In this document: one piece after another, positions 12,787-61,672 of the stretch
How positions within the stretch are numbered: the stretch's first letter is position 1
How the letters are laid out: each line of letters begins with the position of its first letter
Assembly (NCBI GenBank): GCA_039096225.1
Contig: JBBPEB010000005.1
Coordinates: 558,001 to 622,000 of the forward strand
Length of the DNA: 64,000 nt
From: Blastocystis sp. Blastoise
Taxonomy: Eukaryota > Protista > Bigyra: Opalinata
Direction: 5' to 3'
The notes under the pieces: model-generated
Database searches by the model: none
What the model was told of the DNA's origin: nothing
What the model saw: only the letters and a program-made list of their open reading frames with translations
Translations under genes and position numbers: made by a program

Positions 12787-12854
12787 CCTTAAGACAGGAA
12801 TTGAACCTGTTTTCTATCATAAACTGATAGATACTTACCAATATAAGCTTAAGG
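12787..12854 (-). ncRNA. 68-nt tRNA-like cloverleaf, copy A (in CACTA)
   Basis: ccttaag|ctta-tattgg-taag|ta|tctatc-agtttat-gataga|aa|acagg-ttcaatt-cctgt|cttaagg; all four stems pair perfectly. Confidence 0.85.
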
Positions 12855-14596
12855 ATAATATAGAATAAAAATACATAAATGAAAGTAAAATAGTAGGAAT
12901 AATGAGTCAGTATGATGTGTAAGGATATATTTATATATGTATAAGTGAAAAAGGATGCTAGAAGAAGGGAAAAGAAGTAAAAAAGAATAAAAGAGAAAGA
13001 AATATAAAGTAAATGAGATAGGGTCTTTAATTATTGAGATTAATAAAAAAAATGAAAAATAATTTATAATAAATGACAAAGATAGATATATAGAGATCTA
13101 TAATAATAAGGAATGCAGAAGAGAAGAGGATTAGAGGATAAAGAATAAGAAGAAGATAAGGAAGATAAGGAAGAAGATAAGGAAGATAAGGAAGAATAAG
13201 AAGAAGATAAGGAAGAAGATAAGGAAGATAAGGAAGAATAAGAAGAAGATAAGGAAGAATAAGAAGAAGAAAAGAAGAATAGGAAGAAGATAAGGAAGAT
13301 AAGGAAGAAGAAGAAAAGAAGAAAAGGAAGAAGATAAGGAAGAAGAAGAAGAATAGGAAGAAGAATAAGAAGAAAAGGAAGAATAAGAAGAAGAAGAAGA
13401 TAAGGAAGATAAGGAAGAAGAAGAAGAAGATAAGGAAGAAGAAGAAAAGAAGAATAGGAAGAAGAAAAAGAAAAGAAGAATAGGAAGAAGATAAGGAAGA
13501 AGAAGAAGAATAGGAAGAAGAATAAGAAGATAAGGAAGATAAGGAAGAATAAGAAGAAGATAAGGAAGAAGAAGAAAAGAAGAATAGGAAGAAGATAAGG
13601 AAGAAGAAGAAGAATAGGAAGAAGAATAAGAAGATAAGGAAGATAAGGAAGAATAAGAAGAAGGAAATGAATAATGACAACAAGAAGATGAAGAATAAAT
13701 AGAATAATGATAAGAAAGAATAAATAGATTAATAAGAGAACAAGAGGATGAATGTGAAGAAGAGACAAGGAAGGAGGTGAAAAAAAGAAAGAAAAGTAAG
13801 ATAAAGAATAGGAAGAAGATATACAAGAAAATGAAGAAGAAGAGAAAGAAAAGAAAAGAAGAATAAACAAGAAACATATATAGAGAAACAGAAAGATATA
13901 AAGAAATAAAAGAGATAGATAGATAGATAGATAGATAGAGAGAAAAAAAATACAAAGATATAAATAGATAGATACACTAATAGATGAATAGAAAGAAAGA
14001 AGAAAAGAGAGACATAAAGAAGAAATTAGATAGAAAGAGATAGAATTCTATATAGAATGAGAGATATACAAAAGAAATCAAATGAAATAGAGAATAAGAT
14101 AAAAATAGATACAAGAATAAAGATAAAAAGAGAAATAGAGGAGTAGGGAAGGTGTATAAAAAAGAAAGAATATAAAGATAGGTAGAGAGGAATTGAGAAG
14201 GATAGAGAAGGAGGAGGAAAACAGATAGAATTGGAAGACGAAGAAAAGAAGATGAGACGAAGAAGGGAGAAAAAAGGAGCAGGAAGTGAATATCAAGAAA
14301 GATAAATTTATATAGAAAAAAATTAGAAAGAAAAATACATACAAAGAAAACGATAGGGAATGATAGAGAGAATTATAATTTGAATGACATAGAGAGAAGG
14401 AGAGACAAAGCAAGATAAAGAAGTATAATAGAAAAAACAAAGAAGAAAAAAAGAAGAATAAAAAAAGAAAAGATAGAACAATAGTATATGAGAGAAGAAA
14501 GAGACAGAAAGAAAACGGGAAATAGGGTAGAGACATAGAAGGTAATAAAATATATAGAAGGGGAGAGGGGATTGAGATAAATAAATAGATAGATAT

Positions 14597-14669
<73 letters not shown>

Positions 14670-16960
14670 GATAGAAGAATACCGAAAGATATAGAGAAGG
14701 AGATAAATATTAATAAAAAGGAAAATATGGATAGAGAGGAGATAGAATCAAACAGAGAAGGAGAAGTAGATAAAAGTCGATTGAGGGAAGAGAGAAGTAG
14801 ATTAAAATAAAAACAAATAGCAAGAGTTAAAAGGAAGAAGGGAAGAATATAGAATGATTTGAAGAATGAGATGTATATAGAAGTGAATAGAAGGAAATAG
14901 AGAAGGAGAAGTAGATAGAAAAGATTAAAAATAGAAGGAGATAGAAAGATAAGAGAATGATATAGATACAATAGAATGAGATAGAGAAGATAAAGTAGAT
15001 AGAAATGGATAGAAATAAGAAAAATAAATAGGATAAGAGAGAAAGAGAGATAAAAGGATATAAAAGGATATAGAAGGAGAGAAAACGGATTGAGATGTAG
15101 TAAGATGGAAGGATGTAGATGGAAATAGAGAAGTAGATAGAAGATGATGGAGAATAAAGAGGAGATAGAAGAGGAGATAGAAGGAGAAAAAGAAGAAGAG
15201 GAAGTAAATTAAGTTAGAAGGAGATATAATAAGATAGAGAAGTAGATATACGTAGATATAAGGAAATATACGAAGATATAAGTAGATAAGAGAAAATAGA
15301 AGGAAATAGAGAATGAGATTGAGACACATAAATGAGGTAGAATGAGATAGATAAGGATAGAGAAATATGAAGAGAAATATAGGAATACAGAGAGATAGAA
15401 TGATGTTGAAAGAGAAAGAAAAGGAAAGACTGAAGATTGAGACAGAAGGAGTAGCTGAGATAAAAGGAAGATAGAGAAGGAAATTGAAAGATGAAGGAAG
15501 AAGGAGAGAAGATGAAAGAAGAAGAATATAGAAGAAGATAGAGAATGAGATAATAGGGATAGAAAGAGAAAAATAGGAAAAAAGATGGTTAGAAGAAAAT
15601 AGAAAAGGAGAAAGAAGGAGAGATAGAAGGAGAAATAGAAGGATATAAAAGAGATTAAGAAAGAAGTTAGAGACAAGAAGATATAGATATATAGAAAGAA
15701 ATAAAAGGATTAAATAGAAGATTAAGATAGAAGAAAAGAGACAAAATAGAAGTAGATATAACAATATAGAGAATGAAAGGATAGAAATAAAAATAGAAAA
15801 TAGATAACTAGAACATAAGAATATATAATAATAGAGAGAAGGAGAGAGAGAAAAAAAAGTAGATATAAAGTGGAAAAGGAGACATAGAAGGAAATATAAA
15901 AGGAAACAAGAAGGTAGAAAGAGACATATAAGATAAAATAGACAGGGACAGAGAGAAATAAATGGAAAAAGAATAAGGATAAAGATGGATACGAGAATAG
16001 AGAGGGAGAGAAGGAAGATTGAGATAGAATTATACAGAAAGAGGAGAGAAGGAAGATAAAGAAGGAAAATAGGGCAGTAAAAAAAAGGGAATCAGAAGGA
16101 GGAGAGAAGAAGTATGAGAAGAATAGAAAGAAGGAAGAGGAGGAAGGCAAATAATAGAAGAGAACTATATATATAATAAATAGTGATATAAATATAAATA
16201 AGAAGATGAAGATCTGAAAAAAGCAAAGAATTATATGGAGAAGAAGAAGAAGAAGAAGAGGAAGAGGAAGAAAAGGAGGGTATACACTAATACATGTCGA
16301 GGAAAAAGAAGTATAGAATAAGGAGAAGAGGATAACAGGATAAAAGAAAAAGACATAACGAAATACAATGTAAATAGAATAGTGATTAAGAAAGAGTAAT
16401 GAAAGAGTGATATAAAAGGGAAGCGAAGATAAGAGAGAGGTATAATTAAAAAAAAGAAAAATAAAGGAATTTAGATAGAAGAAAAAATAAAAGAAAAATG
16501 AAGATCTGAGGAAGATAATGAATCAAAGGGAGAGACAAGGATATAGGCTGGAGACAAGGCATAGGAAGAAGTAATAAAGAAAGAAGATGAAGAAATAAGG
16601 AGATAAAAGTGTAGAAGGAAGAAAATGAAGAAGAGAGAAGAAGGAATCATTTTGTGTAAGAAGAAGAAATAAAGAAGAACTAGATAATAAATAAATAAAT
16701 AAATAAATAAATAAACATACCTAATAGAAAAAAATGAATTTGGTGATGTTGAGTCATAGGGAAAGATAACCAACAGAAACAGTAGAAAACAACCTAAATA
16801 AATAAATAATAATAAATAAAAATATAAAAATAATGAAAATAAATAATAAAATGAATTAGATTCTAATTTAAGAAAAAACAAAAAGAAAGCTAATAATAGA
16901 TAGAATGAATATACGATAAGTACTCTATTATATAATACTTAAAAATATAACAAAGAAAAA
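12855..16960 (+). repeat. Purine-rich (A/G) low-complexity tract with GAAGATAAG/GAAGAATAAG array (13140-13660) and (GATA)n (about 14586-14668)
   Basis: Very few C on the plus strand. Overlapping F/L/S-rich ORFs in all minus frames are compositional. Confidence 0.9.
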
Positions 16961-18622
16961 AATTAGAGATAATTATAAAAATAAATAAATACATATATAC
17001 TTTGAAAGTAGTTTGACATCATAGACGTTGTTGACATGGACTGAAGAGGACTCTTATAACCATGGACGAGCAGGAACCTATACATGCTAGAGAATGGGAG
17101 AATGTTAATATTGATAAAGAATAAAAAATAGTAATATACATACAAGAGAATAATCTGAAGTTAAAATCAACTTCTATTTTTTAAAATAACAGCTAATAAA
17201 AATAAAATAAAAATAAAGAAAATAAGTAACAAATGAAAATATTTTCTAAGTTAATAGGCTCAATAGCGTATGGGTGTATTCAGGTCTTAAAAGAAAAATC
17301 ATTTTTGCGGGAATATCAAGAAACTCAAAAAAAGTATTTTTTCCCTCCTTTTTTCACTGTCACTTTTCTTTAATATTTTTGACTTTTTAGTATTAAAAAC
17401 GATTCTTACAGGCATGTATAGAGACTCTATACCACTTTTGAGACTAAAAATCAAATATTTAAAAATGAGTGAAAATCTTGACTAGCAAGAAAAACAATTA
17501 TGTGAAGCTGAGTATGTTGTGTATACACATATCTAACAACAGAGATGATAAAAACACACAACTCCTCTTGGTTTAGGACATAATTATGAATTCTCTCAAA
17601 AAAGCTATTTTAAACCTTAAAACGATACCCTGAACTATAAATCAAGTCCTGAATGATATTCTAAAGTCATATTTTTAAAAACAGGTTTAATGACGATAAT
17701 CAATAAACAAAAACAAGAGCTTCCGTTTTACTTTTCTTTTTTGAATTTTTAATTGTTTTGACTTTCTAGGGTAGTTGGCTGAAAGAAATGTTGTCGTCTT
17801 TAGGCTAAAAAATGATGAATAAAAAAGTCAAGTCATTTTATTGTTTTTTCCTTGGGAAATAAAAAAGAAGAAATTTTTAGGTGTGTTTTGGTTTAGGCTG
17901 TATAATGGTTTTTATTGTAAAAGGACTTGACGAGAATGATTGAAATGATAATACATCACTCAGAGAACACACAACTTTAAAAAATTTGTCACTCATGTAA
18001 TCCATTCCTGAATTATAGACTTCAGAGAAAAAATTAAAGTCTTTTTGGTTTTAAACAGTCATTTTAAATCATAAAACACTGTAAAATAGTCAATATTTAG
18101 AATGTCTATGATTATATAAATAAACAATATATTTTGTAGAGTTATTTTTAAGTTTTTCTCGTCAAAAAGAGAGAAACTTGACAAGTTGGCGGACACTCTT
18201 TTCTCGAGTTTAGGCCAACGTATTTTTGATTAAAAAATCCCAGTCATTTTGTTGTTTCTCTTACGGGAAATAGGGTCAAAAAAACACAAAATGTCCATAG
18301 TGATGTTGATGATGTAAATAGTATTCAGAATGAAAACATGGAATCAGTGTGTTATAATGAATTTACAAGTCGAGAAGATATGCTAGAATTCGAGATTAAT
18401 AATTTATACTCTATTAAAACAATATATCAAACAAAACAAGAATTGATAAAAGATATAAGTACAAAACTAAAAGATAAAGGCTATTCATATAAAATTAATA
18501 AATCAAATAAAACTTAAATAACCATTATCTGCCCTTTTAGTGATTGTGGATTCTACCTTCACTATAGAGGAAATAATATTAGAGGATTCATATTAAAAAA
18601 ATATAAAAATCATAAAAGTGAA

Positions 18623-18656
<34 letters not shown>

Positions 18657-18724
18657 TCTTATTATTTATTATATATATATATGCATTCTTATTATTCTTT
18701 TTATTCATTCTTATTACTCATTCT

Positions 18725-19060
18725 ATATATATATTCATCTTATATCATCATATTATCATATATATATTCATCTTATATCATCATATATTCATATATATAT
18801 TCATCTTATATCATCATATATTCATATATATATTCATCTAATATCATCATATATTCATATATATATTCATCTTATATCATCATATATTCATATATATATT
18901 CATCTTATATCATCATATATTCATATATATATTCATCTTATATCATCATATATTCATATATATATTCATCTAATATCATCATATATTCATATATATATTC
19001 ATCTAATATCATCATATATTCATATATATATTCTTCTTATATCATCATATATTCATATAT
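18725..19060. repeat. 33-bp minisatellite, about 10 copies
   Basis: atatatatattcatcttatatcatcatatattc unit; the ORF track shows the 11-aa repeat YSYIYSSYIII. Confidence 0.9.
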
Positions 19061-19339
19061 TGTTTGGTTTATATTCATCATGTAGAACAACTCAGTATGA
19101 ATAATTTGTATATTTATTAGCCAGTATAATATAATATGGTACACGTATTATTCATTAACAAGGAGAGTAATAACATTATTATGTTACTAAAAAACTGAAT
19201 TATTTGAATTCATTAACTAAATAATATATTTATATTTGAATACATATATCAATATTTTGAAAATGAGAATATAATGGCAACATCAGTGACTAATTAGTAA
19301 TCTAATTCATTAATACGAGAAAAGAGTTTATATCAATTG

Positions 19340-22300
19340 AGAGACTAATAAAGTTTGAATAATAGAGATAAGAATAAAAATAAATAGAAGACTAGTAATA
19401 AAAATCTGAATAGAAGTATGGACAGTAATATAAGAAGAAACAGGAGTTATAGGTACAACCAGAAGAAGGAGAATAATCTATCAATATAGTAAAATTTGTT
19501 TCATAATAAGAAGAATTTGGAAAATAAAGTAACTAAATATGTATAAGGAAGATAAAGGAGAAATTAGGATTAATAGGAGCAAGTAATGAAATAGCAACAT
19601 AAGAATGATGAATAATAATAGAAGAAGAGGAAAGTAAATAAATATAATTGAAGAAGTAGTAGCATAAGAAGAAGAATATTATACAAAATATAAGAAGATG
19701 CAGTAGTAGTGTAAGAAGAAGTAATAGTATAGTTATACCACTATAAGAAGAAGAAGAAGAAGAAGAAGAAGAATCATAATAATAATAATAAGTAGAAGAA
19801 GAAGAACAAGTAGAAGTAGACTTATAAGAAGAATATCAAGAATGAGAATGAGAAAGAAAAGGGGAAAAAGAAGAAAGAGAAATAGAAATAGAAGAAGGAA
19901 GAGAAAATAAGTACAAGTAGAATGAGAAGAATAACAATAATAAGAAGTAGTGAAGTAGATATAGATATAGAAGATATAGAAAAAGTAGAAGTATATGTGG
20001 ATGTATAAGTAAAAAAAAAGTAGTGAAGTAGAAGTAGAAGTAGATGTAACTAAGTAGAAGTAGAAGTAGAAGTAGAAGTAATTCTAGAAGAAGAAAAAGA
20101 AGAAAAAGAAGAAGAATGAGAATGAGAAGAATGACAAGATGTAGAAGTAGAAGTAGAAGTAGAAGTAGAAGAATAAGAAGAAAATAAGAAGAAAATAAGA
20201 ATAAACCAAGAATAAACATAATAAGGAAAACATCAGTAGAAGATAAGAAGAAGGAGAATAAGAATGATTAGAAGTATAAAAAAAAGAAGAAGTAGAAGAA
20301 GAAGAAAAAAAAAAAAGAAGAAGAAGAAGAAGAAGGAAAAGAAGGAGAAGGAGAAGAACAACAAGAAGAAGCAGAAGAAGCAGGACAAGTACAAGTACAA
20401 GGACAAGGAAAAGATGAAAGGCAAGAAAAGGGAGTACAACGATAAGGACAAGAAAGATAAGAATAAGGATAAGACGAATAAAGAAGAAGGACAAGGAAAA
20501 TAAGAATAAACCAAAAATAAGTATAATAATGAAAACATCAGTAGAAGCTAAGGATAAGTAGCATGAGAATGATTAGAAGTAGAAGTACAAGGATAATAAA
20601 AAGAAGAAGATGGAGAAGGGAGAAGAATATGTGGAAATAAAAGAAAAAACATGAAAATAAAATGTGGAACAAGAAGAGACTAAAAAGAGAATAGAAGGAG
20701 AGGAGTAAAATATGAATAGGAAGGAGAAGGATAAGAAGGATAAGAAAGATAAGAGGATAAGAATGACAAAGAGAAGGACAAGATGGAGCAAGAGATGAAC
20801 GAGAAGAACGAAAAGCAGAAGAAGGAACAAGAGAAGAAGAAGAAGTAGAAGTAGAAGTAGAAGTAGAAGTAGAAGTAGAAGTAGAAGTAGAAGTAGAAGT
20901 AGAAGTAGAAGTAGAGTAGAAGAAGAAGGAGAAGGAGAAGAAGAAGGAGAAGAAGAAGGAGAAGGAAAAGGAAAAGGAAAAGGAGAAGAAGAAGAAGAAG
21001 TAGAAGAAGAAGAAGAATAAGGAGAACAAAGGGAAAATAAGAATGATTATAAGAATAAGTATAAGGATAATAATAAGAAGAAGACGTAGAAGCAGAAAAT
21101 ATGTGGAAGTAGAAAAAGAAACATATAAAATATGGAACAAGAAGACTAAAAAGAGAATAGAAGGAGAGGAGCAAAATATGAATAAGAAGGAGAATAAGAA
21201 GGATAATGATAAGAAGGGGAAGAGTAGAAGAATGACAAAGAGAAGGAGGAGAAGGAAGAAAGAACGAGAAAGAGACGAATGGAGAAAGGAAAGAGAAGAG
21301 GGAGAAGGATAAGAAGAAGCAGAAGGAAAAGTAGAAAAAGGAGAAGCAAGAGTAGAAGAAGGATAAGAAGAAGCAGAAGGAAGAGTAGAAGAAGGAATAG
21401 AGAAGGAGAAGTAAAAACAGAAAGAGAAAGAAAAAAAGGAACAAGAGAAAAAGAAAGAGAAAGAGAATGAGAATGAGAAGAATGAAAAAGAGAAAGAGAA
21501 AGAAATAGTAGTATAGAAGTAGAAATAGAAGCAATAATAGTTGGAAAAGGAAAATTAGAAGAAGAAGAAGGTGGAGAAGAAAAAGAAGTAAAAGTAAAAG
21601 TATAAATAAAAGAAGAATAGGAAGGAGATATAGAAGCAGACGAATAAGAAGAAGTAGAATGAGCATGAAAAAGAAATAAAAGTATTAGTAATAGTGTAGA
21701 AGTAGAAATAGAAATAGAAGGAAAAGGAGAATTAGTAGTAGAAGAATGAGAAATAGAATATAGAAAAGAAATAGAAGAAGAAGAAGAAGAAAGAGAAGAA
21801 AGAGAAACAGAAAGAGAAGAACAAGGAGAAGTATAAGCACAAAGATAATGAGAAGAAAAAGAAGTAGTTGTAATAGAAGTGAATGTAGAAGTATAAGAAG
21901 TAGTAGAAATAGAAGTAGAAGTAGGAGTTGGAGTTGGAGTACAAGCGAAGTAGAATAGAAATATAAGTAGAAATATAAGTAGAAGAATGAGAAGTAGTAT
22001 TAGTAATAGTGTAGAAGTCGAAATGGAAGAAAAAGAATAAGAGTAAGTAGTAGTCGTAGAAATATGAGTATAAGCAAGTAGAAATAGAAGAATAAAGAAA
22101 AGAAGGAAAGAAGCTGAAGTAGAAGAAGTATAAATAAAAGAAGGTAAATATAAGAAGAAGAAGAAGAAGTATAAGGAAAAGAAGGTAAATATAAGAAGAA
22201 GAAGAAGAAGAAGTATAAGGAAAAGAAGGTAAATATAAGAATAATAATAATAATAATAGTAAGGAGAAGTAGTAAAAAAGAAGAAACAGAAGAATAAGGA

Positions 22301-27732: not shown

Positions 27733-27774
<42 letters not shown>

Positions 27775-28093: not shown

Positions 28094-28141
<48 letters not shown>

Positions 28142-46760: not shown

Positions 46761-46845
<85 letters not shown>

Positions 46846-49279
46846 TTCTTCAACTAAAGCAACATTCGTATATTTATATAACACCTATATAATATATATA
46901 TGTAATTACAGTTTTACTAGTTATATTTTTATATAACTAATAAAACTATAGAGACATGAATAACAGAAATATAAACAATAGGATATTATTAGTAATTATA
47001 GGTACATAATATAAATTATATAAAAAAAATAAAAAATTATTGTACGGAAAATAGAATAATATATAAAAATAATGTGAAACAATATACTACAATAAAACAA
47101 TTACTTACATATAAAAACTATATACCTTAGATATAAAAATTGATGACCATGAAGTTTATAACATAAGGGAAACGTCACATTCTCTATATAAAAATACTAG
47201 TTAATATATAAATATATATATATATATATTAAGAAGTAATAGAAAATAATATGCTAATAATTAAATATATATATAATATACCTAGTCACATAATAGTATT
47301 GATGTAGAGAAGCTAATGAGTACATAGCTTAATAATACTATATATATGAATAAGAATAAAATATATCGAAAATAAATAATACATATATATATATATAAAC
47401 TATAATAAAAGAATGATAATTAATAGTCCTATATAGAAAAATAATATAATAAATTAATAAAATATTAAGAATTTATAAATAATAAAAATATATATATATA
47501 TATTTGAACCATATATCAATGTTAGAGCCTCAGTTATAACAAAAATAAATAACTACAATATACAAATTTAATTAAACAAATATATATAATTTTAATAATA
47601 TAAAAATAAAAAAATATATACTTTTTAGCCATATTCTTCTAGTATTTTTTTTTGTATATATAACCATATCAATTTACTCCATATATCTATAGAAAAAAAT
47701 AATTATTTAATATATTTATATACTTTTAAGGACTCGATAATTGTGCTGAAATCGAAAAGTTACAAAAATTCCAAAACAATAATCACTTGCCATTTCTATA
47801 TAATTAGATACAATATAGCATTAATAACATAAATATATACTTCTGATAAAAAAATAAAATAATAAAAATCAAAAGAAGGACCTAGACATCAATTTTCTTA
47901 GTAGATGGAGACCAATTACTTTTTTTCTTTTGAATTTCCTAAATAAATAATTAAATATACAAACAAAAAACAAAATAATATACCACTAGAACATACACCA
48001 AAGAATATTCTTAAAGAGGAAATTCCGATCATTGCGTTTTCTTCCAATATTGTAGCCAACTCCACCGGGCTCTCTAAATCATGTTTCTAAACCTATATAA
48101 ATAATGGTAAATCAAATAAGTATATACGTGAAAGAATGAATCACTAATTGGTTTATTATCTGGATTCATTTCAAGCCTAATCTATAATAATCTACCTAAT
48201 AAAATATAATATAAATATAAATAATAAAATAACCTTCTAAATAAGCAAATAATCCATATAATAATATTTAAAAAATATTCTTTTTTAGGAGTTCATTTAA
48301 GCCGTAGCTGAATACGGTTTTCCAAAGATTTAAGTGATTCTGAAAGACTCCAAGAATAGGGACCATATCAAAGAAGACTTTTTATACCATACTTTGAATC
48401 TCTAGAAATTATTTTTAAAACTTGTTCACTGAAACCCAAAAAAGTTTCTATAGAAGAGATTAATTCCGCTATTTAGGCTGTTTTTCCTCTGTTTCCATCC
48501 TCAGAATGGTTATTTCTTGAAAATCAAATATTGATTTATTTCATATATTTTCATTATAAGCATATAAAATGAATCTATGTATGTTTTCTAGTTATAAATA
48601 TATATATTATATAGTTTACTCTCTTCAAATATTTAATTTTATATAGTAATCAGTTGATCAATGGGTTATTTCTTGTTTATATGCTCAAAACAAACTTCAT
48701 CTGGTTTCAGATCAATTCAAAAGGTCTTGGTAAACAATACTGATGAATCTAAGGTATATAGATATTTTTCATTTTCTCATTTTGTTTATTTTTTGCTATA
48801 TCTATTTCTTGTCTATGCTATTAATACATCACTATCATTCTAATAGCATCCCTATCTTTTTTTAATTTTATATTATACTTTTTATAATTGAATTAGCTCC
48901 TATTTTTCTATCTTGTTGTTTTTCTAATATGTTTATACTTTAATTAATTTTATTAATTTATTCTACGTATTTATTTATAGAATCTTAGCGTATTTAAGCA
49001 CAACTTGGGAATCAGATTGCGATGATTCAAGTCTTTATTAAGGTATATATGTATTTAATAATATAGTTAGTTTGTTTTAACTGACTATTAATAATATATA
49101 TGTTATTTTTTTCTTTATATTATAATTATTAATATTCTATTTTTATAATATTATATATTCTTTAGACCTAGTGGTATTTTTATTGTTTCTTCTATAAAAC
49201 AAAAAATTGATTACAAATATTATTAGTCTATTAGGAAAGTTGCAATTTATTATTCTTTTATTTATTAAATTTTTTGGTT

Positions 49280-52200
49280 TACAAAATTTCATTCTTCATT
49301 CTTCATTCTTCATTCTTCATTCTTCATTCTTCATTCTTCATTCTAATACACTTCTTACTACATCTTTTTCTTCTTTTTTGTATAGATATTAATTTTTCTT
49401 TATTTGTTTTCATAACTATTACCTCTTCACGAATTCTACTATTATATTTTATTATTATACTTCTAATTATCCTTTCCTTTTCATTCTTCTTCTTCTTCTT
49501 CTTATCCTTCTTCTTATCCTTTCATTCTTATTCTTATTCTTCTTACTTTACGTCTACTACTTATTCTTCTTCACCTGTACATCTTATTCTACTTCTCCTT
49601 ATTCTCCTTCTTCACTTATGTTTCCTTTTCTTTTTTTTCTCCTTGTAAATTTACTTCTCCTTGTTATTGTCATCTTCTTTTTATTATTCTTAGATATATT
49701 TCTCTTATTCTTATTTTTCTTCTCCTTCTTCAACTTCTTCAACTTCTTCTTTTTCATATATTGTTGTTACTTCTTTTTTTACTTCTTTTTTTACTTCTTA
49801 TTTTACTTAATATTTTGTTTCTTATTTAGTTTTTCCATATATCTCACTTTCTCCTTCTTATTCCACGTCTCCTTATTTTTTAATTTCTCTTTCTTATTTT
49901 TATTACTATCCTCGTGCTACTTCTCGCTTTCCTTCATATGCGACTTTCTCATTCTCCTTTCCCTTCATCATACTATTCATATTTTCATTCTGCTTATCTA
50001 GTTACTTTTACTTATTTTTTTTATTGTAATTTCTATTTTACTTCTCATTCCTATTTTCCTTCTTTTAATTGATATTATTCTTTAATTATTATTATTTTTA
50101 CGCTTATTCTCGTTCTGCTTCGCCTTCTACTTATTCTTGTCTCCTGTTAATTCTTCTTCTACTTCAGCATTTCATTCTTAATTTCCTTCTTATTCTAATT
50201 CTACTTCTTATTTCTGGTGTTATTCCTTTGTTTTCATTTCATAAGCCTTAGTGTCTACTTTCCATTTCTCTTTACTATTCACTCAACTTTTACTACTTCT
50301 TCATCTTCCACATTTTATTCTTATTCACCTTATTTTTACACTCTTATTCTACTTCTATTTCTGCTTGTATTTCTACTTCATTTTTTATTCTTATTCTTAT
50401 TCATGATATCTTTCTCTTCTTATTCATGATATCTTTCTCTTCTTATTCATGATATCTTTCTCTTCTTACTTTACTTATACTTCCTAATCATTTCTCTTCT
50501 TATTCTACTTCTATTTCTTGTTCTACAATCTTATTATCATTATCTTTATACTATTCTGCTTCTAGTTAGCCTTAACTTTTTTTCATTCTTCTCCTCCTCC
50601 TTTTGTATCTTCTTTTTCTTATTATTATTATTAGTATTGTCCTTCCATTTCTCATTCTTTTTATTCACTTCTGCTTATCATACTCCTTATTCGTATTCTT
50701 CATTTTCTTATTATTTATTCTAATTCTTCATCTTATCACTTTCCTTCTTCTTCCTTCTTTTCTTATACTTTTCTATCTTCAATTTATTCTATTATTCTTA
50801 TTTTCATTCTTATTAAACTTATTTTTTATTTCTCCTTCTACTTATTATTATTCTCCTTTATATCTTCTTTCTTCTCCTTCTATTTTCATTTCTCCTTTTT
50901 ATTCTTCTTATTCCTATTCTTATTCACTTCATTCTTATTTTTATTGTACTCCTTCCACTTCTAAACTTTCTCTCCTTAATATTCTTCTTTTTATTCTACT
51001 ATTTATCTCATTTTCCTTCTACTAACACTTCATATTGTCATCTTTCTTATTTTATTCTTATTCTCATTATACTTATACATATGGTTCTACTCATACTTAT
51101 TGTTCTCCTTCTACTTCATTTATACTTTTACATCTATTCATACTTCTCTTATGGTTCTACTACTACTCTCTTAGTCATATTCTTATTCTTATTGTTCTCC
51201 AAATTCTTCTTTTACTTGTATCTACTTTCTTGTCTAGTTCTCCTTACTCTGCTGGTATACTTCTCACTTTTTATTTATATATATTCTTCTACTTTTGCGT
51301 ATTCTATTTTCACCAAATTCTTCTCACTATCCTTCTATATCTTATTCTAATTCTTACTTTTTCTCCTATTATCTTTCTTTTTTAAACTTCTACTTTTCCT
51401 TCTCTTTGTTCTAGTTCTAGCTTTGGTTCTTCTTCTTCTTCTTCTTCTTCTACTTTTTATCTTCTTCTTATTCCCTATCTTCTCATTCTTTTATATCATC
51501 TTTTTTCTCTATATTTTCTTTTTCTTCTTCTTATTTGTATCGTCATTCTATTTCTTATTCTCATTCCTCTCTTTTTCCTACTATTCTCATCCTATTTCTT
51601 CTTTTTCAAATTCTCTGTCATGTATTCTCAGTTTAAGTCTACTCATTTTCCTTCTGCTTCTCCTTTTTTCATATACTTATTATTTTACATCAAATTCTTC
51701 TTTTCCTTTTGTTTCTCCTTATGTGGTTTATTATTATTCTCCAACATGTTTTTCTTCAACATCATCATCTCCTTTTGCTTCTACTTCTTCTCTTCATTTT
51801 CCTTTCTCTTCGTTGTACTTCTACTTATCCTTTTTATTCTTATTCCTATTATCTTTCATATTTTCCTTTTTCTTCTCATTCTCACTCTCTTTTTGATATT
51901 CTCCTTCTCCTTCTATTTCTTATTATCGTTCTATTTATATTAGTTCTTGTTCTTCTTATTTTACTTCTCATTCTCTTTCTAATTATATAGTCTCTCTTCC
52001 TTTTCTTTATTCTTCTCCTTCTTTTCACGTTTTTACATCATTATTATTATTTTCATTCCTTTTTTATTCTGTTCTTATTCTATTCCTTATACTTCGTCTT
52101 CTTCAGTTTTTTTTCATTCATTACTTTATTCTTCTATTTCTACTTGTACTTATACTTTTTGTTTACTTGTACTTATATTATTACTTACTTTCATTCTTAT

Positions 52201-53958
52201 TCCAATTTCTACTACTACTACTAGTTCTATTACTACTTGTTATTATTCTTATTCCTATTTCTTTCTACTAGTATTTATTCTTATTCTAATTCTACTTATC
52301 ATTGTACTCGTGCTTCTATTCTTACTTTTATTTATACATGCACGTCTACTTCTACTTTCTTTTCTACTTCTAGTTCTACTTATACTTTCTAGTTTTCCTT
52401 CTTCTTCTTCTTCTTGTTCTTTACTTCTACTACCACTACTTATGACTATTTCTCCTTCTACGTTCACTTCTCCTTTTACATGTACTCGTACTACTATTAA
52501 TTCTTATTCTTCAATTTGAACTTCTACTCTTTTTCGTCTACTTTTTATTTTAGTTCTATTATAATTCGATTTCTTCTACTTCTACTTATTCTTCTACTTC
52601 TAGTACTTCTTGTTTATCAACTTATATTCATCATTTTACATCTACTTATACTAGTATAACTTCTTTTTATTATTATTTATATTAGACTCTTTTAATTCTA
52701 CTCCTTATTCCTATTATATTTTTCTTCTATTTCTTCTATTTCTTCTTCTATTTGTACTTATAATTATACTTCATCTATTCTTATTCATATTCTCTTTCTC
52801 ATTCTTCTATTTATATTTATAATTATACTTCATCTATTCGCCTTTTCTTTTTCCTATTTTACTTATACTTTGTTTCTTCTATTTATACATACATAATTGT
52901 GCTTCTCCTTCTGCTTCTAAGTCTAAGTCTAAGTCTATTTACACTACTACTACTTCTACTACTTCTAGTACTTTCTCAGTCAGTTTTTATTCCATTCTTA
53001 TTCTTATTCTTATTCTTATTCTATTCTTATTCTTGTTTTTTCCAGATTCTTCTTTTTTTGCCTTTCTTCTACAGGCTTGTCTATTTCTCATTATTCTACT
53101 TGTATGCTTCTCATTTTTTATTCTTCATATTCTTCTAATTTAACGTATTCTGTTTTATTCTAAATTCGTCTCATTTTGCTTCAATTTTTCTTCTACATCT
53201 TATTTATATATTCCTATTTTCTTACTTATTTTCATTCTACTTTTCATTTCCCTTTATTCTGTTTCTCGATCTACTTCTTCTTCTACTTTATCTTCTTCTT
53301 CTCCTTATTCACTATCTTCTGCTTCTTCTATATCATTTTTTACTCTATATTTTGTCTTCCTCAGTATTCTTTTTATTTGTAGTATCTTTCTTTTTATTTT
53401 TGTGATTCCTCTTCTTGTTCTTATTCTTCTTATTATATTTCTTCTTTTTCAAATTCTTCCTCTCCTCATTTTCATTTAGTTCTTCTTGTTTTCCTTCTGC
53501 TTCTTTTTATTTTTGTTATTCTTATTTTACTTCACACTCTCGTTTTCCTTCTATTTCTTTTATCTTTCTTATTATCATCCTTTCTATTTTTCTTCAACCT
53601 TAGCTTCTCCTTCTGCTTCTACTCCTTATCTCCATTTTCTTTATACTCCTCCTTATACTTCTACTTATTCTTCTTATTCTCATTCCTATTATCTTTCATG
53701 CTTTCCTTTTTCTTATCATTTTCAATCTCTTTATTCTATTTCTCATTATTTTTCTTTTTCTTTTTCTTCTATCCATACTTATTAAAGTTTGTTTTTTATT
53801 ATTCTTTTACTTCTCGTTCTATTTCTCAATATTTTACTTCTTTTTACTTTTCTTTATTCATCTCATTTCCTCTTCCTCCTTATTCTTCTGTTTCTTCTTT
53901 TTTACTACTTCTCCTTACTATTATTATTATTATTCTTATATTTACCTTCTTTTCCTTA

Positions 53959-53991
<33 letters not shown>

Positions 53992-55640
53992 TATTTACCT
54001 TCTTTTCCTTATACTTCTTCTACTTCAGCTTCTTTCCTTCTTTCCTTTATTCTTCTATTTATACTTGTTCTTCTACTCATATTTCTACTACTACTACTTA
54101 CTGTTATTTTTTTCTTCCATTTCGACTTCTACACTATTACTAATACTACTTCTCATTCTTCTACTTATATTTCTACTTATATTTCTATTCTACTTCGCTT
54201 GTACTCCAACTTCAACTCTTACTCCTACTTTTGCTTCTACTACTTTTTTATGCTTCTACATCCATTTCTATTACAACTACTTCTTGTTCTTCTTTTTCTA
54301 TTTCTCTTTCTTCTTCTTTTTTTTTCATTTTCATTCCATTATTGCTATTCTTCTATTTCTTCTTCTTATTCTCATTCACATTCGTATTATTAGTATTATT
54401 TTTTCTTCTTCTACTTCTTTCATTCTTGTTTCTTCTATTTCATTTCTATATTCTATTTCTCATTCTTCTTCTTCTCTTTCTCATTTTCTTCTTCTTCTTC
54501 TTCTTCTTCTACTGATTCTCATTTTCCTTTTCCATCTATTTCTACCTATTTCTACTTCTGTTTCTACTACCATACTTTTATTTCTTCTTCTTTCTCATTT
54601 TATCTCAACTTATTCGTCTACTTCTCTATCTCCTTTTCAATATTCTTCTTCTCATACTTTTTCTTCTATTGATTCTTTTACTTTTACTTTTACCTTATTC
54701 TTGTCCTTATTCTCTTTCTCCTTTTTCTCTTTTCTTTTCCTTCTTCTACTTCTATAATTTCTTTCTTCTCCCCCTTTTCTTTGTGGTTCTTCTCTTTCTC
54801 TTTCTTCTTCTACTTTTTCTTCTTATAATTTTATTTTTTCATCTTCTTCTCCTTCCTCCTTCTCCTTCTTTTGATTCCTCCTTTTCCTTCTTCTCCTTCT
54901 TCTTAATCTTTCTTCTTCTCCTTCTTCTATAATTTTTCTTCTTCTCCTCCTTCTATAATTTGTCTTCTTCTCCTTTTTCCTTTTGCCATTCTTGTCATTC
55001 TTGTTTTTTTTTGTCATTCTCCTTCCTATTCTTTTTCTTCTCATTCTTCTCCTCCTTCTCTTTCTTCTTCTGTTTATTTTTTCCTTCTTCTCTTTCTCGT
55101 TCTTTCTTTCTTATTCTCCTTCTCTTTGTCATTCTTATCCTTCTTATCCTTCTCCTTCTTATTCATATTTTGATCCTCTCCTTCTATTCTCTTTTTAGTT
55201 TCTTCTTTTTCCATTTTTATTCACATGCTTTTTCTTCTACTCCCACATATGCTTCTCTTTCTCCGTCTTCTTCGTATTATTATTCTTATGCTTCTACTTC
55301 TAATCATTCTCATTCTACTTATCCTTACCTTCTATTGATGTTTTCCTTATTATGTTTATTCTTGGTTTATTCTTATTTTCCTTCTTGTTCTCCTTCTCCT
55401 TCTCCTTCTTTTTCTTTTATTTCTGCCATTCTCTTTTTTTATCGTTCTTCTTGTCATTTCTTTCTCCTATCCTTATCCTTATCTTTGTCCTTTTTATCCT
55501 TCTCCTTCTACTTCTTCTTCTTATCCTTATCCTTATCCTTCTTCTTATCTTTATCCTATCCTTCTTCTTCTGCTCCTTGTCCTTGTCCTTGTCCTTCTCC
55601 TTCTCCTTCTTATTCTTGTCCTCTTTCATTTATTTGCATA
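49280..55640 (+). repeat. Pyrimidine-rich low-complexity tract (MULE-B), including a 24-bp triplication at about 50395-50470
   Basis: Inverted homologue of 19340-26290; for example 54109-54211 is the reverse complement of 21932-22034. Confidence 0.9.
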
Positions 55641-55931
55641 TGCAATAATTTGTAATACATATTACTCTAGCTGGTTTCATTTTGGATTTATATCCGTTGA
55701 TGAGTATTCTTTTTTATTAGTCTTAGTCTCTTTAATATGAATATCTGCAATATCAACGACATATATGATATTATATTTGAATCAATAACAAAACAATGAT
55801 CTTATAAATAAGAAGACATTTATATTAAATATGATTAATTAAAAATATTTTATATTATTAGGAATGTAAAAAAATTAATATGTATTATAGATTATAATAA
55901 GTATATACATAGACTTATCATTTAAAAAATA

Positions 55932-58203
55932 CTACTTTCTTCTCTTCGAACTATATTCTGATGATTCTACATCTTCAAGTGTAGGAATTGAGGCAATATC
56001 AGTTTCTTCATATTTCTCTTTTTCAGCTTCAACTGCACACTCATTCAAACACTCCAAAGCTGGAATACTGTTCTTTATTTTCCAATACTTATTTTTCAGA
56101 TAATAAGATGTTATATGAGAATAGTTAAACTTAGATGGTCGACCTGATTTACGAATTGGATTATTTGGTCCTGTAATATTTATGTGACTTTCTTCTTTCA
56201 AGCATGAATCATCTATTCTTCTATATATAACAAAAAAAAATATTTATATAATATGTATTATATATATCATTACCTATCTACATAATAATTATAATAAGTA
56301 TTCATATGGTTCTTATATGGAATGAAGTATTTGGCAATAGTATTGAAATCGTCAATTCCTTGTTGATTATACGAAACACTGCTATTATACTTTTTATATA
56401 GAAGAATAGCATGTATACAAGGATAACCTTGGTATTGAAAAATTGAACAAGAACATGTATTCTGTTCAAAATTAATTATGTATTCACGGTTTTCTTCTTC
56501 CATTACTAGTCTATATAAACCCTTATTTATACTCTTATATGATATCACATTAGAAACAAATATATCAGCCATATCAAACTCTTTTTGAAAGTAAGGAAGA
56601 AAGAATGATATATGAGGTGCCTCTTTTATTTTCAGTTGATAATTAATTGCATGATTATAGATTTCAAACAATACCTTCTGTATAGACATTCCTCTTATGT
56701 CACTAATAAGATTATTAAATGACTCGGCCAAACTTGAGGCAATGTATCCATATCTGGATACATGAGGTGGTAGATCTATATTATACATATTCTTTCCCCT
56801 TTGTGAGAGTATTTGCTTCTTCTGGTTCTCTGTTATTGAAGAATCATTAATAAGCTTATAGAATTCTTCTTCATCATCAATTAGAATGAGTTGTGATATT
56901 AGTCCTATTATTCTTGAATTCACATTTGTCATCTTCTTTAGAATATGAAATGCACATGATATATATGTGCATTCAGGAAAGACTACTCCTAGGCTTCCTT
57001 TGAGACCTTTGTCCATATCTGAGAAAAATGTTATGTTTGTAGTTTTACATGACATGAGTTCAAGTGCTTTTTTCAGATTAGTTTGGAAATCACTCCAGGT
57101 AGCTAAACACTCTACAGCATATATACCATAAGCAAGAAGAAGTATTTGTCTATTAATAGTAATGGATATAGCAGTTAATATGATATGATCATTCATATAC
57201 ATATGAGTTCCATCCATAAAGATTACTGCTTTATTTCCCTTCTTATATAATGCTATATTTGATTTAATAGATACAAAAGAATATAGAAACTCATGACTTA
57301 TTACTTTATTATTCCCTACTGCTTTGTTTAATTCTCTATCCATGTTTATTTCTTCATGTATATTCATATTGGAATTATTTCCACTACAAACTGAATCATT
57401 TTCAGAATAATTCAGAACACTATCTTCCAAGTTTACTCTGAAAGTTTCATCTTGTTCTAAATGATTATCTACTATATTCTCATCTATATTAGATTGAATA
57501 TAAGAAGAAGAAGGATAAGCATTAATATTCTTATATGTATATCCTGGAGGGAGGCAACCATATATAGCATAATTTTCTTTGCTTATTATACTTTTTATAA
57601 TACATGGTATTTTACTATAGTCATTAGTTGACTTAATACCTAATTCTCTTAAGGCGTTTCTTGCTATTTCATATGAAACACTGATATTCTTCTTCTCCAG
57701 GAATTGTTTTAACTGAGATATTGATTTGAAATACTTGGCTAGATTATTTTCCTTTAAATAACTCACAACATCATTTGAGCTTATATCTTGATTGTATTTA
57801 TGTGACTTATATTGAATAAATATACATTTATCAGAAATATCTTTAAATATATTATTAAATCTATCTTCTGTAATTCCTTCATTTTGTTCTTCATAAGAAA
57901 ACACATTATCTATTGATGTATCTTCAATATTCAATTCTATATCAATTGTTCTACTTTCTTCATCTTCATGATTATTATCCTTTGATTTATTTATATCTTC
58001 TATGACCATTTCAGAATTTTTACTAGATATGAATGGATCTTCTAAGATAGGAAGAGTTTGGGTATTTGTAGGATTAGAATTAGCATCTGAGCTCCGAGAA
58101 TTGTGTGTAAAATTGATAGTTTCATGTATCTCAGCTTCATCTTCATGATTTTGATCATTACTATTACTAGCATCTTTTGATAGAATCATTGGATTAAGAC
58201 TTA

Positions 58204-58262
<59 letters not shown>

Positions 58263-59286
58263 TTCTTTGCTTCTTTCTATGCATCTCTCTCTATCTCTTC
58301 CATCTCTTACTCTCTCAATATATATATATATATTAGATATTTTTTTCTATCGCTTTCTCTCTCTCTCTCTATATATATATATCTGTCGTTCTCTCTTTAT
58401 ATATTCATAAATGTTTCTTTCTTTCATTCTTACTATATATATAATAGAATTTTTCTTTCTTTCTTTCTCTCTGTATATATTATATAATCTTCCTTTCTCT
58501 ATATATATAGGTGGATATTTCTTCTATTACTCTCATACATTGAATTAATATATAACACTTTTCACATACATATACTACTGTATTTCATTTTTTTCTCTCT
58601 ATATATTTATTTTCCTCTTTTTCCTTCTTTATTCAATGTATAGATTTCTCTCTCACAATTTATATATTGATATATATATATACCTTATATTAAATTGATG
58701 ATTTTTAATTCGATTTTTTATCACTGTATATAATAGAATATTATATACATTATATATTATATTTATATTTAGTTACTTGTCTTAATAATTTGATAATCTA
58801 TTTTATTTTGTTTGTTAAGCTTAATGTAAATCATATTAAAACGATTGCATTTCTATATTAATAATAAGTATAAACTATAATAATTAATTAAATAACATAC
58901 AGTTGAGTCATGATGACAGTATCTTTTCATTATCCATCCAGAAACGTCGTCACCTTGGAAATGAAGCATAAACGGGCAATCGGAAACACAACATTTGTAA
59001 ATAATTCTTCCTTTTTCTGATTTTTGAACCTTAATTGGATATCCTAGCTTTTGCATTTGAATTGAGACATCACTTTTGAGTTTAGACTTATTTTCGTACA
59101 TAATTTGTACTCCATATGTTTCTTCATTTTCAAATTTCTTAATTTCTTCACTATTTTTGAAGTCACTGTAATCAACCTTATTCATACAAAAACGATTTTC
59201 CACATCTTCTTGTGGCTGACTTGAATCAATTGTCTAATTATTAAAAAATAATAATGAAAATGTGTTTTTCGTCTATATACAGACAT
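55932..59286 (-). CDS. Mutator/MuDR-family DDE transposase, 892 aa; exons 59281-59286, 58901-59233, 58777-58852, 58684-58723, 56274-58208, 55932-56220
   Basis: Intron phases 0, 0, 1, 2, 2 are all compatible and total 2679 nt. N-terminal C-x4-C..HH Zn domain. MULE core IFMDGTH, FFSDMDKGL, CAFH, LAESFNN. SWIM finger CSC..GYPCIH. C-terminal RKSGRP. Confidence 0.92.
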
Positions 59287-59799
59287 AGTTGCCGACAATT
59301 TGTAGTAATTAACTTTTTAGTCGTGTAGATATAGTGAAAAATAAATAAATGTATTTTTTGGTGATTTATAACTGCAAATATTATTTTTATAGAGGAAAAT
59401 CACCAAAAAATCAGGAAAATTAGCATTGTTGTTTTCTAAATGCTTTATTTGAGAGCAGTACTATATATTATTACATTATAAATGACTCCAGTCAATTGAT
59501 AAAAGTATCTGAAATATTTATATTATATTTAGTTTAAAAATTCTAGCAATTATATAAAATATGTAAAAATAAAATGCTGGTTTTAACTTAGATAGTTATT
59601 TTTCTTCATTATTATGAGAATTTATTAAATTTTTTTAATGTCTTACATAGTATAAGCTTCACTTGTGAAATATAATAAATCAAATATAAAAATATTCTGG
59701 AGTTTTTTTTCTAATTCTAACAAAATAAAGAAAAAGAATTTTAATTGGTTATTAAGAAATTTGTGTTTTCAAAGTACCAATCGTTTAGAGTCTTGAAAA

Positions 59800-59946
59800 A
59801 GTTTTGGGTATTTCTAACAATTTTGTAAAATTTTTGGGTATTTTAACAAAAATTTTGAATATTTTTGGGTATTTCTAACAATTCGTTTTTTTTTTGGGTA
59901 GGTTAAAATAATTATGGTATTTTTTGGGTATTTCTAACAATGCCTC
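59800..59946 (-). repeat. MULE-B right TIR, five motif copies at about 30-bp period
   Basis: GGGTA(TTTCTAACA) at 59806, 59836, 59867, 59896 and 59926. Confidence 0.9.
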
Positions 59947-59955
59947 ATTGTTTTA

Positions 59956-60978
59956 GGTGGAGATTTTAGACAATGTTTACCAGTAGTTAAAAATGGAAAT
60001 GAATCATCTACTGTTGGTGTATGTTTGAAAAGATTTAAATATTGGAATAATTTTATACAATGTCATTTAGTTCAGAATATGAGAGCAGATAGAGATGCTT
60101 TAGATTTTAAAGAATGGCTAATGAAAGTAGGAAATGGTGAACGATTAAATAATGAATCTGATTTGAATGATAATATTGTAGAAATACCTTCACAATGTAT
60201 AAGTACAGAAAATTTATATAAAGAGATATGGGAGAATATACTTCATAATAGAAATATTTTATCAGAACAACATAGAAAAGATTTATCTGAGAATTGTATT
60301 TTATGTTGTACGAATGAAGATACTTTTGATATAAATGAGAAAGTATTAGATTTAATACCTTCTTCAGAATCAGAAAAAATATATTATAGTTTTGATACTT
60401 TAGAAGATGAAATAGTTAATGATTCTGAAAGAGCTGCTTATTCTCCTGAATTTCTTAATACTCTTCTTCCTCAAGGATTTCCTCCTCATAAATTAAGACT
60501 AAGAAAAGGCTGTATTATTATGTTATTGAGAAATCTTAATATAAAGAAAGGTTTATGTAATGGAACAAGATTAGTTGTTCTTGAAACATTAAATAATGTT
60601 ATTCGTGCTCAATTATTAAATAAGCCAGATAATTTATTACCTGGTGAAGATATTGTATTTATTCCAAGAATCAGTTTAATTACTTCTGATGATTCACTTC
60701 CTACTAAGATGAGAAGAAAACAATTTCCTGTTCGATTAGCTTTTGCTATGACTATTAATAAATCACAAGGTCAAACATTTAAAAATGTTGGATTATATTT
60801 AAAGAGACCTGTATTTAGTCATGGTCAATTATATGTTGCTTTCAGTAGAGTTCGTTCTTTTAATGGTTTACATATTTATGCTGAAAATTGTAATAACAAT
60901 AATCAAGGACATCTTAGTAAAAACTATCCTAATAAGGTATTTACGACTAATTGTATTTTTGATGGAGTTTTAAATTAG
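59956..60978 (+). pseudogene. Helitron-2 RepHel, part 3 (helicase motifs III-VI)
   Basis: GGDFRQCLPVV, LRNLN..GLCNGTRL, QFPVRLAFAMTINKSQGQT, HGQLYVAFSRV; stop at 60976-60978. Confidence 0.93.
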
Positions 60979-61183
60979 TTATCGTTTTATTTGTTTTATT
61001 TGTTTTATTCTATTCTGTGATTTCTTTTATATTTGCTATTGTCTGTTTATATATTTGTTTTTATTTATTATTTTTCTCTTTTCAATTTTTATTTGTTGTC
61101 TTAAAAGTTAAATATAGAATATTCTATTGTTTTGTTAAAACTTAAAAACCAAAAACTAAAAATAGATATTTTAAAATAAAACT

Positions 61184-61221
61184 CAAGCGTAGGCCTGCGT
61201 AGGCAGGCCGTGAAACGCTTG
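61184..61221 (+). terminator. Helitron-2 3' terminal hairpin ending CTTG|T
   Basis: caagcgt-a-ggcctgc-GTAG-gcaggcc-gtgaa-acgcttg, about 200 nt after the RepHel stop; Helitron-1 has a similar spacing. Confidence 0.75.
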
Positions 61222-61604
61222 TATATATTATTTTATTTATTTTTTCATTTTATTTTAGTAGGGACCTTATGAATTCCTTATTTTAAAATAATTATTCTTA
61301 TATATTCGTTACATATACAAGTTCAGTGAATTGTTATATATATATATATTATTCACATATTTGCTTTTTTATTTCATATATATAATTACTAGGGTCACGC
61401 CGCAGGTCCGGGGCCTAACGGCACCGGACCGCGGCTGCAATGAATAATAACTGTTTGGTTTTTATTTACTTTCTTTCCTTTTTATCTATTATATATTATA
61501 TATTATATATTATATAATATATATTATTTATTAAATATTATCTATAATATGTTACTTATTATATATTATATATTATATATTATATATATTATTTTAATAA
61601 CACT

Positions 61605-61672
61605 TCTTATACTCTATATGGAGAGTAGCAATCATTTATTGATTGTAATCAGGTTCAATTCCTGATATAAGA
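61605..61672 (+). ncRNA. 68-nt tRNA-like cloverleaf, copy F (inside the Helitron-3 end)
   Basis: tcttata|ctct-atatgg-agag|ta|gcaatc-atttatt-gattgt|aa|tcagg-ttcaatt-cctga|tataaga. Confidence 0.85.

Follow-up and report, generated by a model that had tools for sequence, protein, structure and literature searches.

A tRNA-like element in nested transposons

The window analysed here, a stretch of 64,000 nucleotides (nt) from contig JBBPEB010000005.1 of Blastocystis sp. Blastoise (assembly GCA_039096225.1; GC content 24%), carries six copies of a short tRNA-like element inside CACTA, Mutator-like (MULE) and Helitron transposons. The strain is the same as Rus-B, the tortoise isolate whose genome is in PMC10690189; low-complexity DNA makes up 11.8-12.7% in tortoise strains, and their introns are long (PMC10690189). 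An earlier note, made from the letters of the window alone, had listed the six copies with their coordinates and strands and a length of 68 nt each, all of which we verified in the window sequence:

c1, 12787..12854, minus: tRNA-like element in CACTA
c2, 30687..30754, plus: tRNA-like element, MULE-2 position a
c3, 34793..34860, plus: tRNA-like element, MULE-2 position b
c4, 40890..40957, minus: tRNA-like element, MULE-1 position b; the sole ARAGORN call (tRNA-Ile)
c5, 44997..45064, minus: tRNA-like element, MULE-1 position a
c6, 61605..61672, plus: tRNA-like element within a non-autonomous H1-family Helitron and antisense to it, 215 nt from the 3' end of the Helitron

Searching the window with a 15-nt T-arm pattern returned exactly these six copies at 0 mismatches and nothing else up to 3 mismatches, at which 0.92 matches are expected by chance. 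The minimum-free-energy fold is the cloverleaf described in the earlier note in all six copies, with folding z scores of -3.0 to -5.0 in four of them and -1.4/-1.2 for those at 34793 and 40890; these two have broken pairs at 1:68, at 11:18 and in the third stem. When the six are aligned, 8 of 22 pairs are altered on both sides and 94.7% of cells pair, against about 41% with slid partners. The six copies are not independent and represent four contexts only, because the pairs 30687/44997 and 34793/40890 each occupy corresponding sites of two related MULEs.

The proposed hosts, a CACTA element, two MULEs and a Helitron, were each borne out by termini or target-site evidence, listed here with target-site duplications (TSDs) and with other loci of the same assembly numbered L001 and up. 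L005 is the locus of the window itself and is identical to it over 18,069 nt.

6118..61221 (approximate), plus: host Helitron; RepHel gene split by two MULE insertions; no tRNA-like element of its own
7609-8833, 36120-39585 and 59947-60978, plus: RepHel pieces of the host Helitron, interrupted by MULE-2 and MULE-1
8824..36109, plus: MULE-2; 9-bp TSD; transposase deleted; interrupts the Helitron RepHel, holds the CACTA and carries c2 and c3
9755..18302, minus: CACTA; non-autonomous; CACTA terminal inverted repeats, 3-bp TSD ATG, empty site in L008; carries c1
39586..59946, minus: MULE-1; 20.4 kb, 10-bp TSD, empty site in L014; carries c5 and c4
56270-58189 (open reading frame), minus: MULE-1 transposase WA158_002995; 100% identical to a Blastocystis sp. 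Blastoise protein
61389..63771, minus: non-autonomous H1-family Helitron, 3' part; hairpin and CTAG end at 61389; carries c6

The RepHel alignment of the host Helitron picks up again across both MULE insertions, the CACTA element sits within MULE-2, and a MULE-2 relative in L008 retains the transposase (P0002). The Helitron at 61389..63771 is 88% identical to a full copy in L012. From the TSD and the empty site of MULE-1, c4 and c5 travel with this transposon, of which seven copies (L001-L007) at different insertion sites are 99.8-99.9% identical over the 14 kb compared.

Further copies in the genome

Covariance models built from the known copies were used to scan about 0.45 Mb of the same assembly, in 18 other loci picked around transposon genes. 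The search yielded 15 more copies, giving 21 in total and 16 distinct sequences of 64-68 nt. All 21 copies are located inside transposons (CACTA, MULE and Helitron), in agreement with the proposal of a module common to unrelated superfamilies and with the many further transposon copies that such a search had been expected to return. The expectation of a uniform 68 nt held for the six copies of the window and failed elsewhere, where lengths of 64-67 nt reflect a shortened third arm. Model scores are bimodal: they reach 65 bits or more, or stay at 16 bits or below, with none between, and there is therefore no trail of decayed copies. The element-bearing transposons outside the window are:

L009 6540-18616: autonomous H1 Helitron, full length, plus derivatives
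L013, L014 and L021: mini-Helitrons
L002: H2-type Helitron with a passenger
L014: second CACTA family
L022 and L025: third MULE family (MULE-3), two copies at different host sites

The MULE-3 transposase is 27% identical to that of MULE-1. No element was found, within the sequence reached, in other MULE families (L023, L024) or in the autonomous H2 Helitron, nor was one present in a light sample of about 70 kb of called non-transposon gene regions. Since the sample is centred on transposon genes, host copies of the element may exist. At L013 3577-4484, a hAT-type (DUF659) transposase gene is broken by a mini-Helitron, the tRNA-like element of which faces the incoming transcript.

The family is known so far from one strain. 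A family-specific pattern gave 0 matches in viral contigs, a collection poor in Blastocystis DNA, and blastn against phages gave no match above 35% coverage. Five metagenome matches and one prokaryotic match to the pattern scored at most 25.7 bits, lacked an acceptor stem and were set aside as ordinary or chance T-arm matches. The viral, metagenome and prokaryote collections being poor in Blastocystis DNA, this blank says little on other Blastocystis.

Fold, covariation and conservation

The 16 distinct sequences were aligned plainly with MAFFT, and a consensus fold was computed with RNAalifold. It contains 24 pairs, of which 14 show a change on both sides; 93% of cells pair, a value that 0 of 500 shuffles reach and that slid controls (about 41%) do not approach. 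Relatedness of the sequences inflates the shuffle test, yet the changes recur in separate lineages. Covariation of the stems, claimed originally from six copies, thus extends to the larger set.

The fold has an acceptor of 7 bp, a D stem of 4 bp with a 6-nt loop ending in GG, a third stem of 8 bp and a T stem of 5 bp, with acceptor and T stems forming a 12-bp stack in a linker-free four-way junction. This retains the acceptor, D and T stems, the GG and the T loop of the cloverleaf first described and corrects its two 2-nt linkers, which pair. Pair 22:44 is U-A in 10 sequences, A-U in 3 and unpaired in 3, and pair 23:43 is A-U in 8, U-A in 3, G-C in 1 and G-U in 1, with A-U, A.A and U-A states among the mini-Helitron copies; because both positions covary, the third stem is 8 bp long and the junction free of linkers. 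The D-loop guanines G16 and G17 and the T-loop stretch T50-A54 (UUCAA) are invariant in 16 of 16 sequences, as is most of the T arm. The third loop is variable in sequence and in length (5-7 nt), its first base usually A and position 37 mostly U, in keeping with the drifting triplet and the inconsistent purine 37 remarked on before. No element encodes CCA.

Standard tRNA spacing, with a 2-nt connector, a 5-bp anticodon stem and a variable loop, is replaced here by 7/4/8/5 bp without linkers. The tRNA tools had been expected to give a pseudogene call or nothing. For Rfam this was so, with chance matches only, for the window at E up to 5 and for one copy as a 111-nt query at E up to 10; ARAGORN gave no call for 20 of 21 copies (L025 lying outside the scan) and departed from the expectation with its sole call, 40889-40959, around c4. 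Judged by these features, the element is not a decoding tRNA. It probably descends from a tRNA ancestor, to go by the variant in L002, whose D arm is nearly canonical.

Element identity between copies is 0.74-0.97, above both 200-nt flanks in 12 of 12 pairs, while random pairs reach 0.53. For c2/c5 the element is 0.96 identical against 0.70/0.78 in the flanks, and for c5/L022 it is 0.91 against 0.63/0.65. On these comparisons, the tRNA-like element is under purifying selection. That shape rather than decoding is selected, as suggested earlier, agrees with the 14 compensatory pairs of 24, the conservation relative to the flanks, the absence of decayed copies and the free third loop. A canonical tRNA match, a lack of covariation and SINE (short interspersed nuclear element) heads with TSDs, named beforehand as outcomes that would speak against the family, were all looked for and none was found.

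In most contexts the element stands between pyrimidine-rich units and conserved tracts

In six of seven contexts (CACTA-1, CACTA-2, MULE-a, MULE-b, H1 and H2-type), the element is the sense-strand end of a pyrimidine-rich unit that lacks a conserved frame. Pyrimidine fraction falls from 0.56-0.94 before the element to about 0.5 past it, and sequence complexity rises there. The units and tracts concerned in the window are:

12855..17140 (start approximate), minus: CACTA pyrimidine-rich unit with GT-AG exon boundaries; ends at c1
27150..30686 (start approximate), plus: unit B1, GT-AG exons then AT-rich, no conserved frame; ends at c2
32050..34792 (start approximate), plus: TC-rich unit B2; ends at c3
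40958..43700 (start approximate), minus: TC-rich unit B2; ends at c4
45065..48300 (start approximate), minus: unit B1; ends at c5
30755..31950, plus: tract downstream of c2, indel-poor and strand-symmetric; its partner downstream of c5 is 43800-44996
34861..36109, plus: tract from c3 to the MULE-2 terminus, partly homologous to the tract downstream of Helitron copies
61673..62950, plus: tract downstream of c6, common to H1-family Helitrons

Upstream units diverge by 20-40% between copies, with frequent indels. Between c2 and c5, indels number 58 per kb upstream and 2 per kb downstream with the switch at the element, and between two H1 copies they number 34 per kb upstream and 3 downstream. In every context the element points into 1.1-2 kb of non-coding sequence, beyond which lies a terminus or a promoter region. 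The MULE-3 unit is directed at the 3' end of the transposase, from which the element is still 2 kb away. The exception is c6, which lies 215 nt from the Helitron 3' end and has no internal upstream unit; with only 215 nt available, any upstream RNA must come from the flank or from the terminal hairpin.

The tract that follows position b of the MULEs can be aligned with that of the Helitrons (E 1e-11; score 118 against a shuffled maximum of 64), which is evidence that a stretch longer than the 68-nt element passed between superfamilies, and we infer from this alignment that a cassette was exchanged.

Read from its sequence, the H1 unit would be transcribed divergently from the promoter region that also serves a small passenger gene. 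Copies that are 75% identical preserve its splice sites on the strand of the element, and its exons contain stops and frame changes. Exon frames were judged on exons read in place; the crude splice-motif count was noisy and was taken as evidence for H1 unit B only. A coding role was rejected for H1 unit B and for MULE units B1 and B2 (stops, frame changes between copies) and for the downstream tract, whose longest run without a stop is 36-74 aa and which shows no codon periodicity.

Polyadenylation in Blastocystis depends on a GU-rich signal (PMC4159000). TTGTT, the core of that signal, occurs 2.5 times per 250 nt after called genes and 0.6 times before the element, against a background of 0.7. 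The H1 sister gene, served by the same promoter region, appears to end in a GU-rich poly(A) signal. No A-rich tract was found ahead of the element, the longest A run in the last 20 nt being 1-4, which leaves no MALAT1-type triple helix.

Several further observations concern these neighbourhoods. The H1 passenger gene (L009 9980-11420; window 63000-63760 minus) has tandem 60-80-nt exons and a repeated GSS...GLE motif; as it apparently ends in a poly(A) signal of its own, two genes may have been merged in the NCBI model of 2079 aa, where it is fused to RepHel. A conserved TGACGTCA site (CRE-like) lies at 31925-31932 and 43830-43837, at the far end of the c2/c5 tract and just before unit B2, and is likely a promoter element. 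Oriented TGAATCTY motifs occur in sub-terminal tracts of Helitrons and MULEs (35404, 40412, 62198, 62442; L008 7633-8127; L023 6496-6990). Those in L008 and L023 have a 247-nt spacing and no tRNA-like element, possibly marking a protein-binding or nucleosome-phasing unit. As a universal downstream motif TGAATCTY was rejected, being enriched only in Helitron and MULE-b tracts and occurring without the element too.

A putative cut site for RNase P and RNase Z

Judged by its genomic surroundings, the element more likely serves in the 3'-end cleavage or termination of non-coding transcripts of RNA polymerase II (Pol II) than through a Pol III B box alone. We propose that the element is a non-decoding tRNA mimic that serves as an RNase P/Z cut site, ending or destroying divergent, antisense or read-through Pol II transcripts of the transposons, and put the probability of this reading at roughly 0.55. 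Pol II would transcribe through the element within a transposon transcript; cuts by host RNase P ahead of position 1 and by RNase Z behind position 69 would release an RNA of 65-69 nt. The upstream RNA, with neither a triple-helix A-tract nor a poly(A) signal, would have an unprotected 3' end and would probably be unstable and degraded, and the uncapped downstream RNA would lead to Pol II termination. In this manner an H1 Helitron could cap off its divergent transcript; in MULE-3 the transcript cut would be the one convergent on the transposase, in MULE-1/2 and CACTA the internal non-coding units, and in mini-Helitrons transcription reading in from the flank. The benefit may be that the conserved tract and terminus downstream are shielded, antisense overlap is limited and the transposase message is protected. 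As a wider and more tentative suggestion, which we hold to be rather less probable than its contrary, the three superfamilies could share a horizontally exchanged cut-off cassette whose fold converged on that of mascRNA and which would recruit RNase P and Z against their own transcripts, so that neither transposase expression nor the termini would suffer interference or silencing.

A number of observations weigh against the cut-site reading. The indel contrast is weak or absent in the most diverged pairs (c3/c4, c5/L022, c1/L014), and the c6 type is 88-97% conserved without an upstream unit inside its element. A MULE-1 TC-rich unit (about 49300-55650) and an H2-type Helitron (L008) have no tRNA-like element. 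Transcription of the upstream units is deduced from splice signals and strand skew. Of the 16 sequences, 15 have a pyrimidine at position +1, where most RNase P substrates have a purine. The seven contexts may also descend from one cassette, in which case their shared orientation would not be seven independent tests. Finally, signals of Pol III are present: the B box, as first pointed out in the earlier note, is perfect in every copy, a partial A box matches at 2-5 of 6 positions in a register that varies by subfamily, and in 7 of 13 contexts, against 15% in the background, T5 occurs in the 30 nt that follow the element.

These last signals are the ground of the strongest rival, in which each copy is a stand-alone Pol III gene, with TFIIIC/TFIIIB forming a boundary or roadblock between low-complexity DNA and the promoter or terminal tract and the transcript trimmed like a pre-tRNA. 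TA repeats upstream and T4 runs within 30 nt downstream (8 of 13, against 32% in the background) are further points in its favour; the c6 type would require no upstream unit, and a boundary would also account for the change in mutation pattern. A DNA-level barrier, however, has no need of compensatory changes in the acceptor, D and third stems. The register of the A box differs from one subfamily to another, no copy matching all six positions, and a near T4 terminator is missing from several contexts: there is none within 50 nt in six of 13, including 3 of 4 of the c6 type, and the distance is 54-94 nt or farther in five. The orientation is also fixed relative to the upstream unit. As for the B box, its consensus overlaps the T loop in every tRNA mimic, and mascRNA, which derives from Pol II, is among these. 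On balance we consider the Pol III gene unlikely, about half as credible as the RNase P/Z cut site.

A less probable rival takes the released 65-69-nt RNA as the real product, a transposon-encoded decoy or guide that binds, for example, host tRNA-binding or silencing proteins, with the upstream unit as its carrier. It would explain why the element is far better conserved than the carrier, why the third stem is conserved and covaries although RNase P/Z mainly read the acceptor/T arm and the elbow, and why some transposons carry two copies; mascRNA, moreover, is stable and reported to act in the cytoplasm (PMC12941219). It fits poorly with a third loop that drifts freely in sequence and length and with the missing CCA, and an RNA acting in trans would have no need to lie always upstream of a conserved tract at a terminus or promoter. 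Either route, cleavage or Pol III, could yield a functional small RNA.

Least probable, and already largely refuted, is an ordinary origin (divergent tRNA genes or pseudogenes in Pack-type transposons, organellar tRNA insertions or SINE heads), to which the single tRNA-Ile call, the tRNA-like D arm of L002 and a host source gene that the light non-transposon sample could have missed lend some colour, against the missing Rfam tRNA match, the 20 of 21 copies that ARAGORN passes over, the invariable lack of linkers, A at loop position 32, U mostly at 37, loops of 5-7 nt, and the absence of a flanking direct repeat above 8 nt, a tail, a shared body or decayed copies. The SINE form was rejected on the best flanking direct repeats, which are AT-rich words of 0-8 nt, and on flanks whose similarity follows the transposon families alone; an organellar tRNA and a suppressor tRNA were rejected as well.

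If the RNase P/Z cut-site reading is true, 3'-end formation by the tRNA machinery would exist in a stramenopile and so would not be a vertebrate oddity. It would provide a cis-acting RNA module common to cut-and-paste (MULE, CACTA) and rolling-circle (Helitron) elements, selected in recently active families, and a transposon strategy for managing non-coding transcription that is undescribed in the literature searched. The 16 natural variants are on offer for learning what RNase P and Z require.

Other features of the transposons

The whole window is occupied by nested Helitrons, MULEs and CACTAs, to be set against the 5.6-7.5% of the genome given for transposable elements in the genome paper; the words 'tRNA' and 'Helitron' have zero occurrences in the text of that paper (PMC10690189). 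MULE-1 is a giant, recently active element of 20.4 kb with at least seven near-identical copies. Helitrons insert beside or into each other's ends in head-to-tail arrays (6117, 61221, 61389; L009 6539; L012 14963), and two families of Helitron 3' hairpins are present, ending in CTAG and in CTTG. Both MULEs contain 6-kb strand-skewed purine/pyrimidine low-complexity units (19600-26300, 49300-55650) with repeat spacings in multiples of three and no tRNA-like element at the end; in other copies these units are annotated as genes of 422 and 179 aa.

Both CACTA families have a small multi-exon unit towards one end (10200-10950 minus; L014 23500-24250), and the exon-to-element distance is alike in the two (about 1600-1730 nt) despite their deep divergence. 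Tandem arrays in MULE-2 relatives and a Helitron (18626-19153; L008 3000-5540, 9080-9350) are of three types: a 33-nt unit, a long degenerate AT-rich array and a 6-nt repeat. At L024 20406-21512, a weak phage-integrase (tyrosine recombinase) match stands among MULE transposase genes and is possibly Crypton-like.

Comparison with known systems

No account of such an element in Blastocystis or in DNA transposons was found in the literature searched, subscription journals lying largely outside it, in line with the earlier remark that no described family like it was known to its author. Pol III-type RNA motifs are tied to mobile elements in tRNA-derived SINEs, in tRNA-targeting Dada and in 5S-carrying Cassandra. 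Unlike these, the Blastocystis element has no TSD, tail, body or decayed copies and moves inside transposons instead of being their target. Canonical tRNA, tRNA-Pyl and mt-tRNA-Ser(UCN) have the cloverleaf, the T-loop motif, the D-loop GG and the 7-bp acceptor, the last two with a shortened connector; the Blastocystis element, in contrast, is without a connector, a variable loop or anticodon-loop identity, and its loop length varies. The analogy drawn at first with mt-tRNA-Ser(UCN) is not the best match, since the fold is the linker-free junction of mascRNA and menRNA.

Plant mitochondrial t-elements are tRNA-like cis signals for RNase P/Z cuts that form transcript ends (PMC1920247). They resemble the present element as non-decoding tRNA-like structures, and as cut signals for RNase P/Z, a role proposed for the present element. 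The differences are that t-elements belong to organelles, vary in fold, are linked to mRNA ends, and form neither a single family nor mobile units.

The closest parallel is with the mimics mascRNA and menRNA, which RNase P and RNase Z excise from MALAT1 and NEAT1 (PMC11693755, PMC12941219), described as the only long non-coding RNAs known to use the tRNA-processing machinery (PMC12941219). In mascRNA the acceptor occupies positions 1-7, the D arm 8-18, the third arm 19-33 and the T arm 34-50, eight linker residues are absent, and the elbow is formed by two D-loop guanines and the T loop (PMC11693755). The Blastocystis element shares the linker-free junction with the acceptor joined directly to the D arm, the lengthened third stem, the 7+5 bp acceptor/T stack, the conserved elbow of D-loop GG and T loop and the unencoded CCA. 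It may also share the sense position ending a long non-coding unit, of which six of seven contexts show signs in the sequence. It differs in the size of its D arm (14 nt, against 10-11) and third arm (23 nt, against 15-17), both of them larger, in having no Rfam match to that family and no upstream triple-helix A-tract, and in upstream units that are spliced, judging by splice signals, and fast-evolving; it is multicopy and resides on DNA transposons of a stramenopile. With the same topology and no Rfam kinship, we read the likeness as convergence: the element is not a member of the mascRNA family but, by analogy, most likely works like mascRNA.

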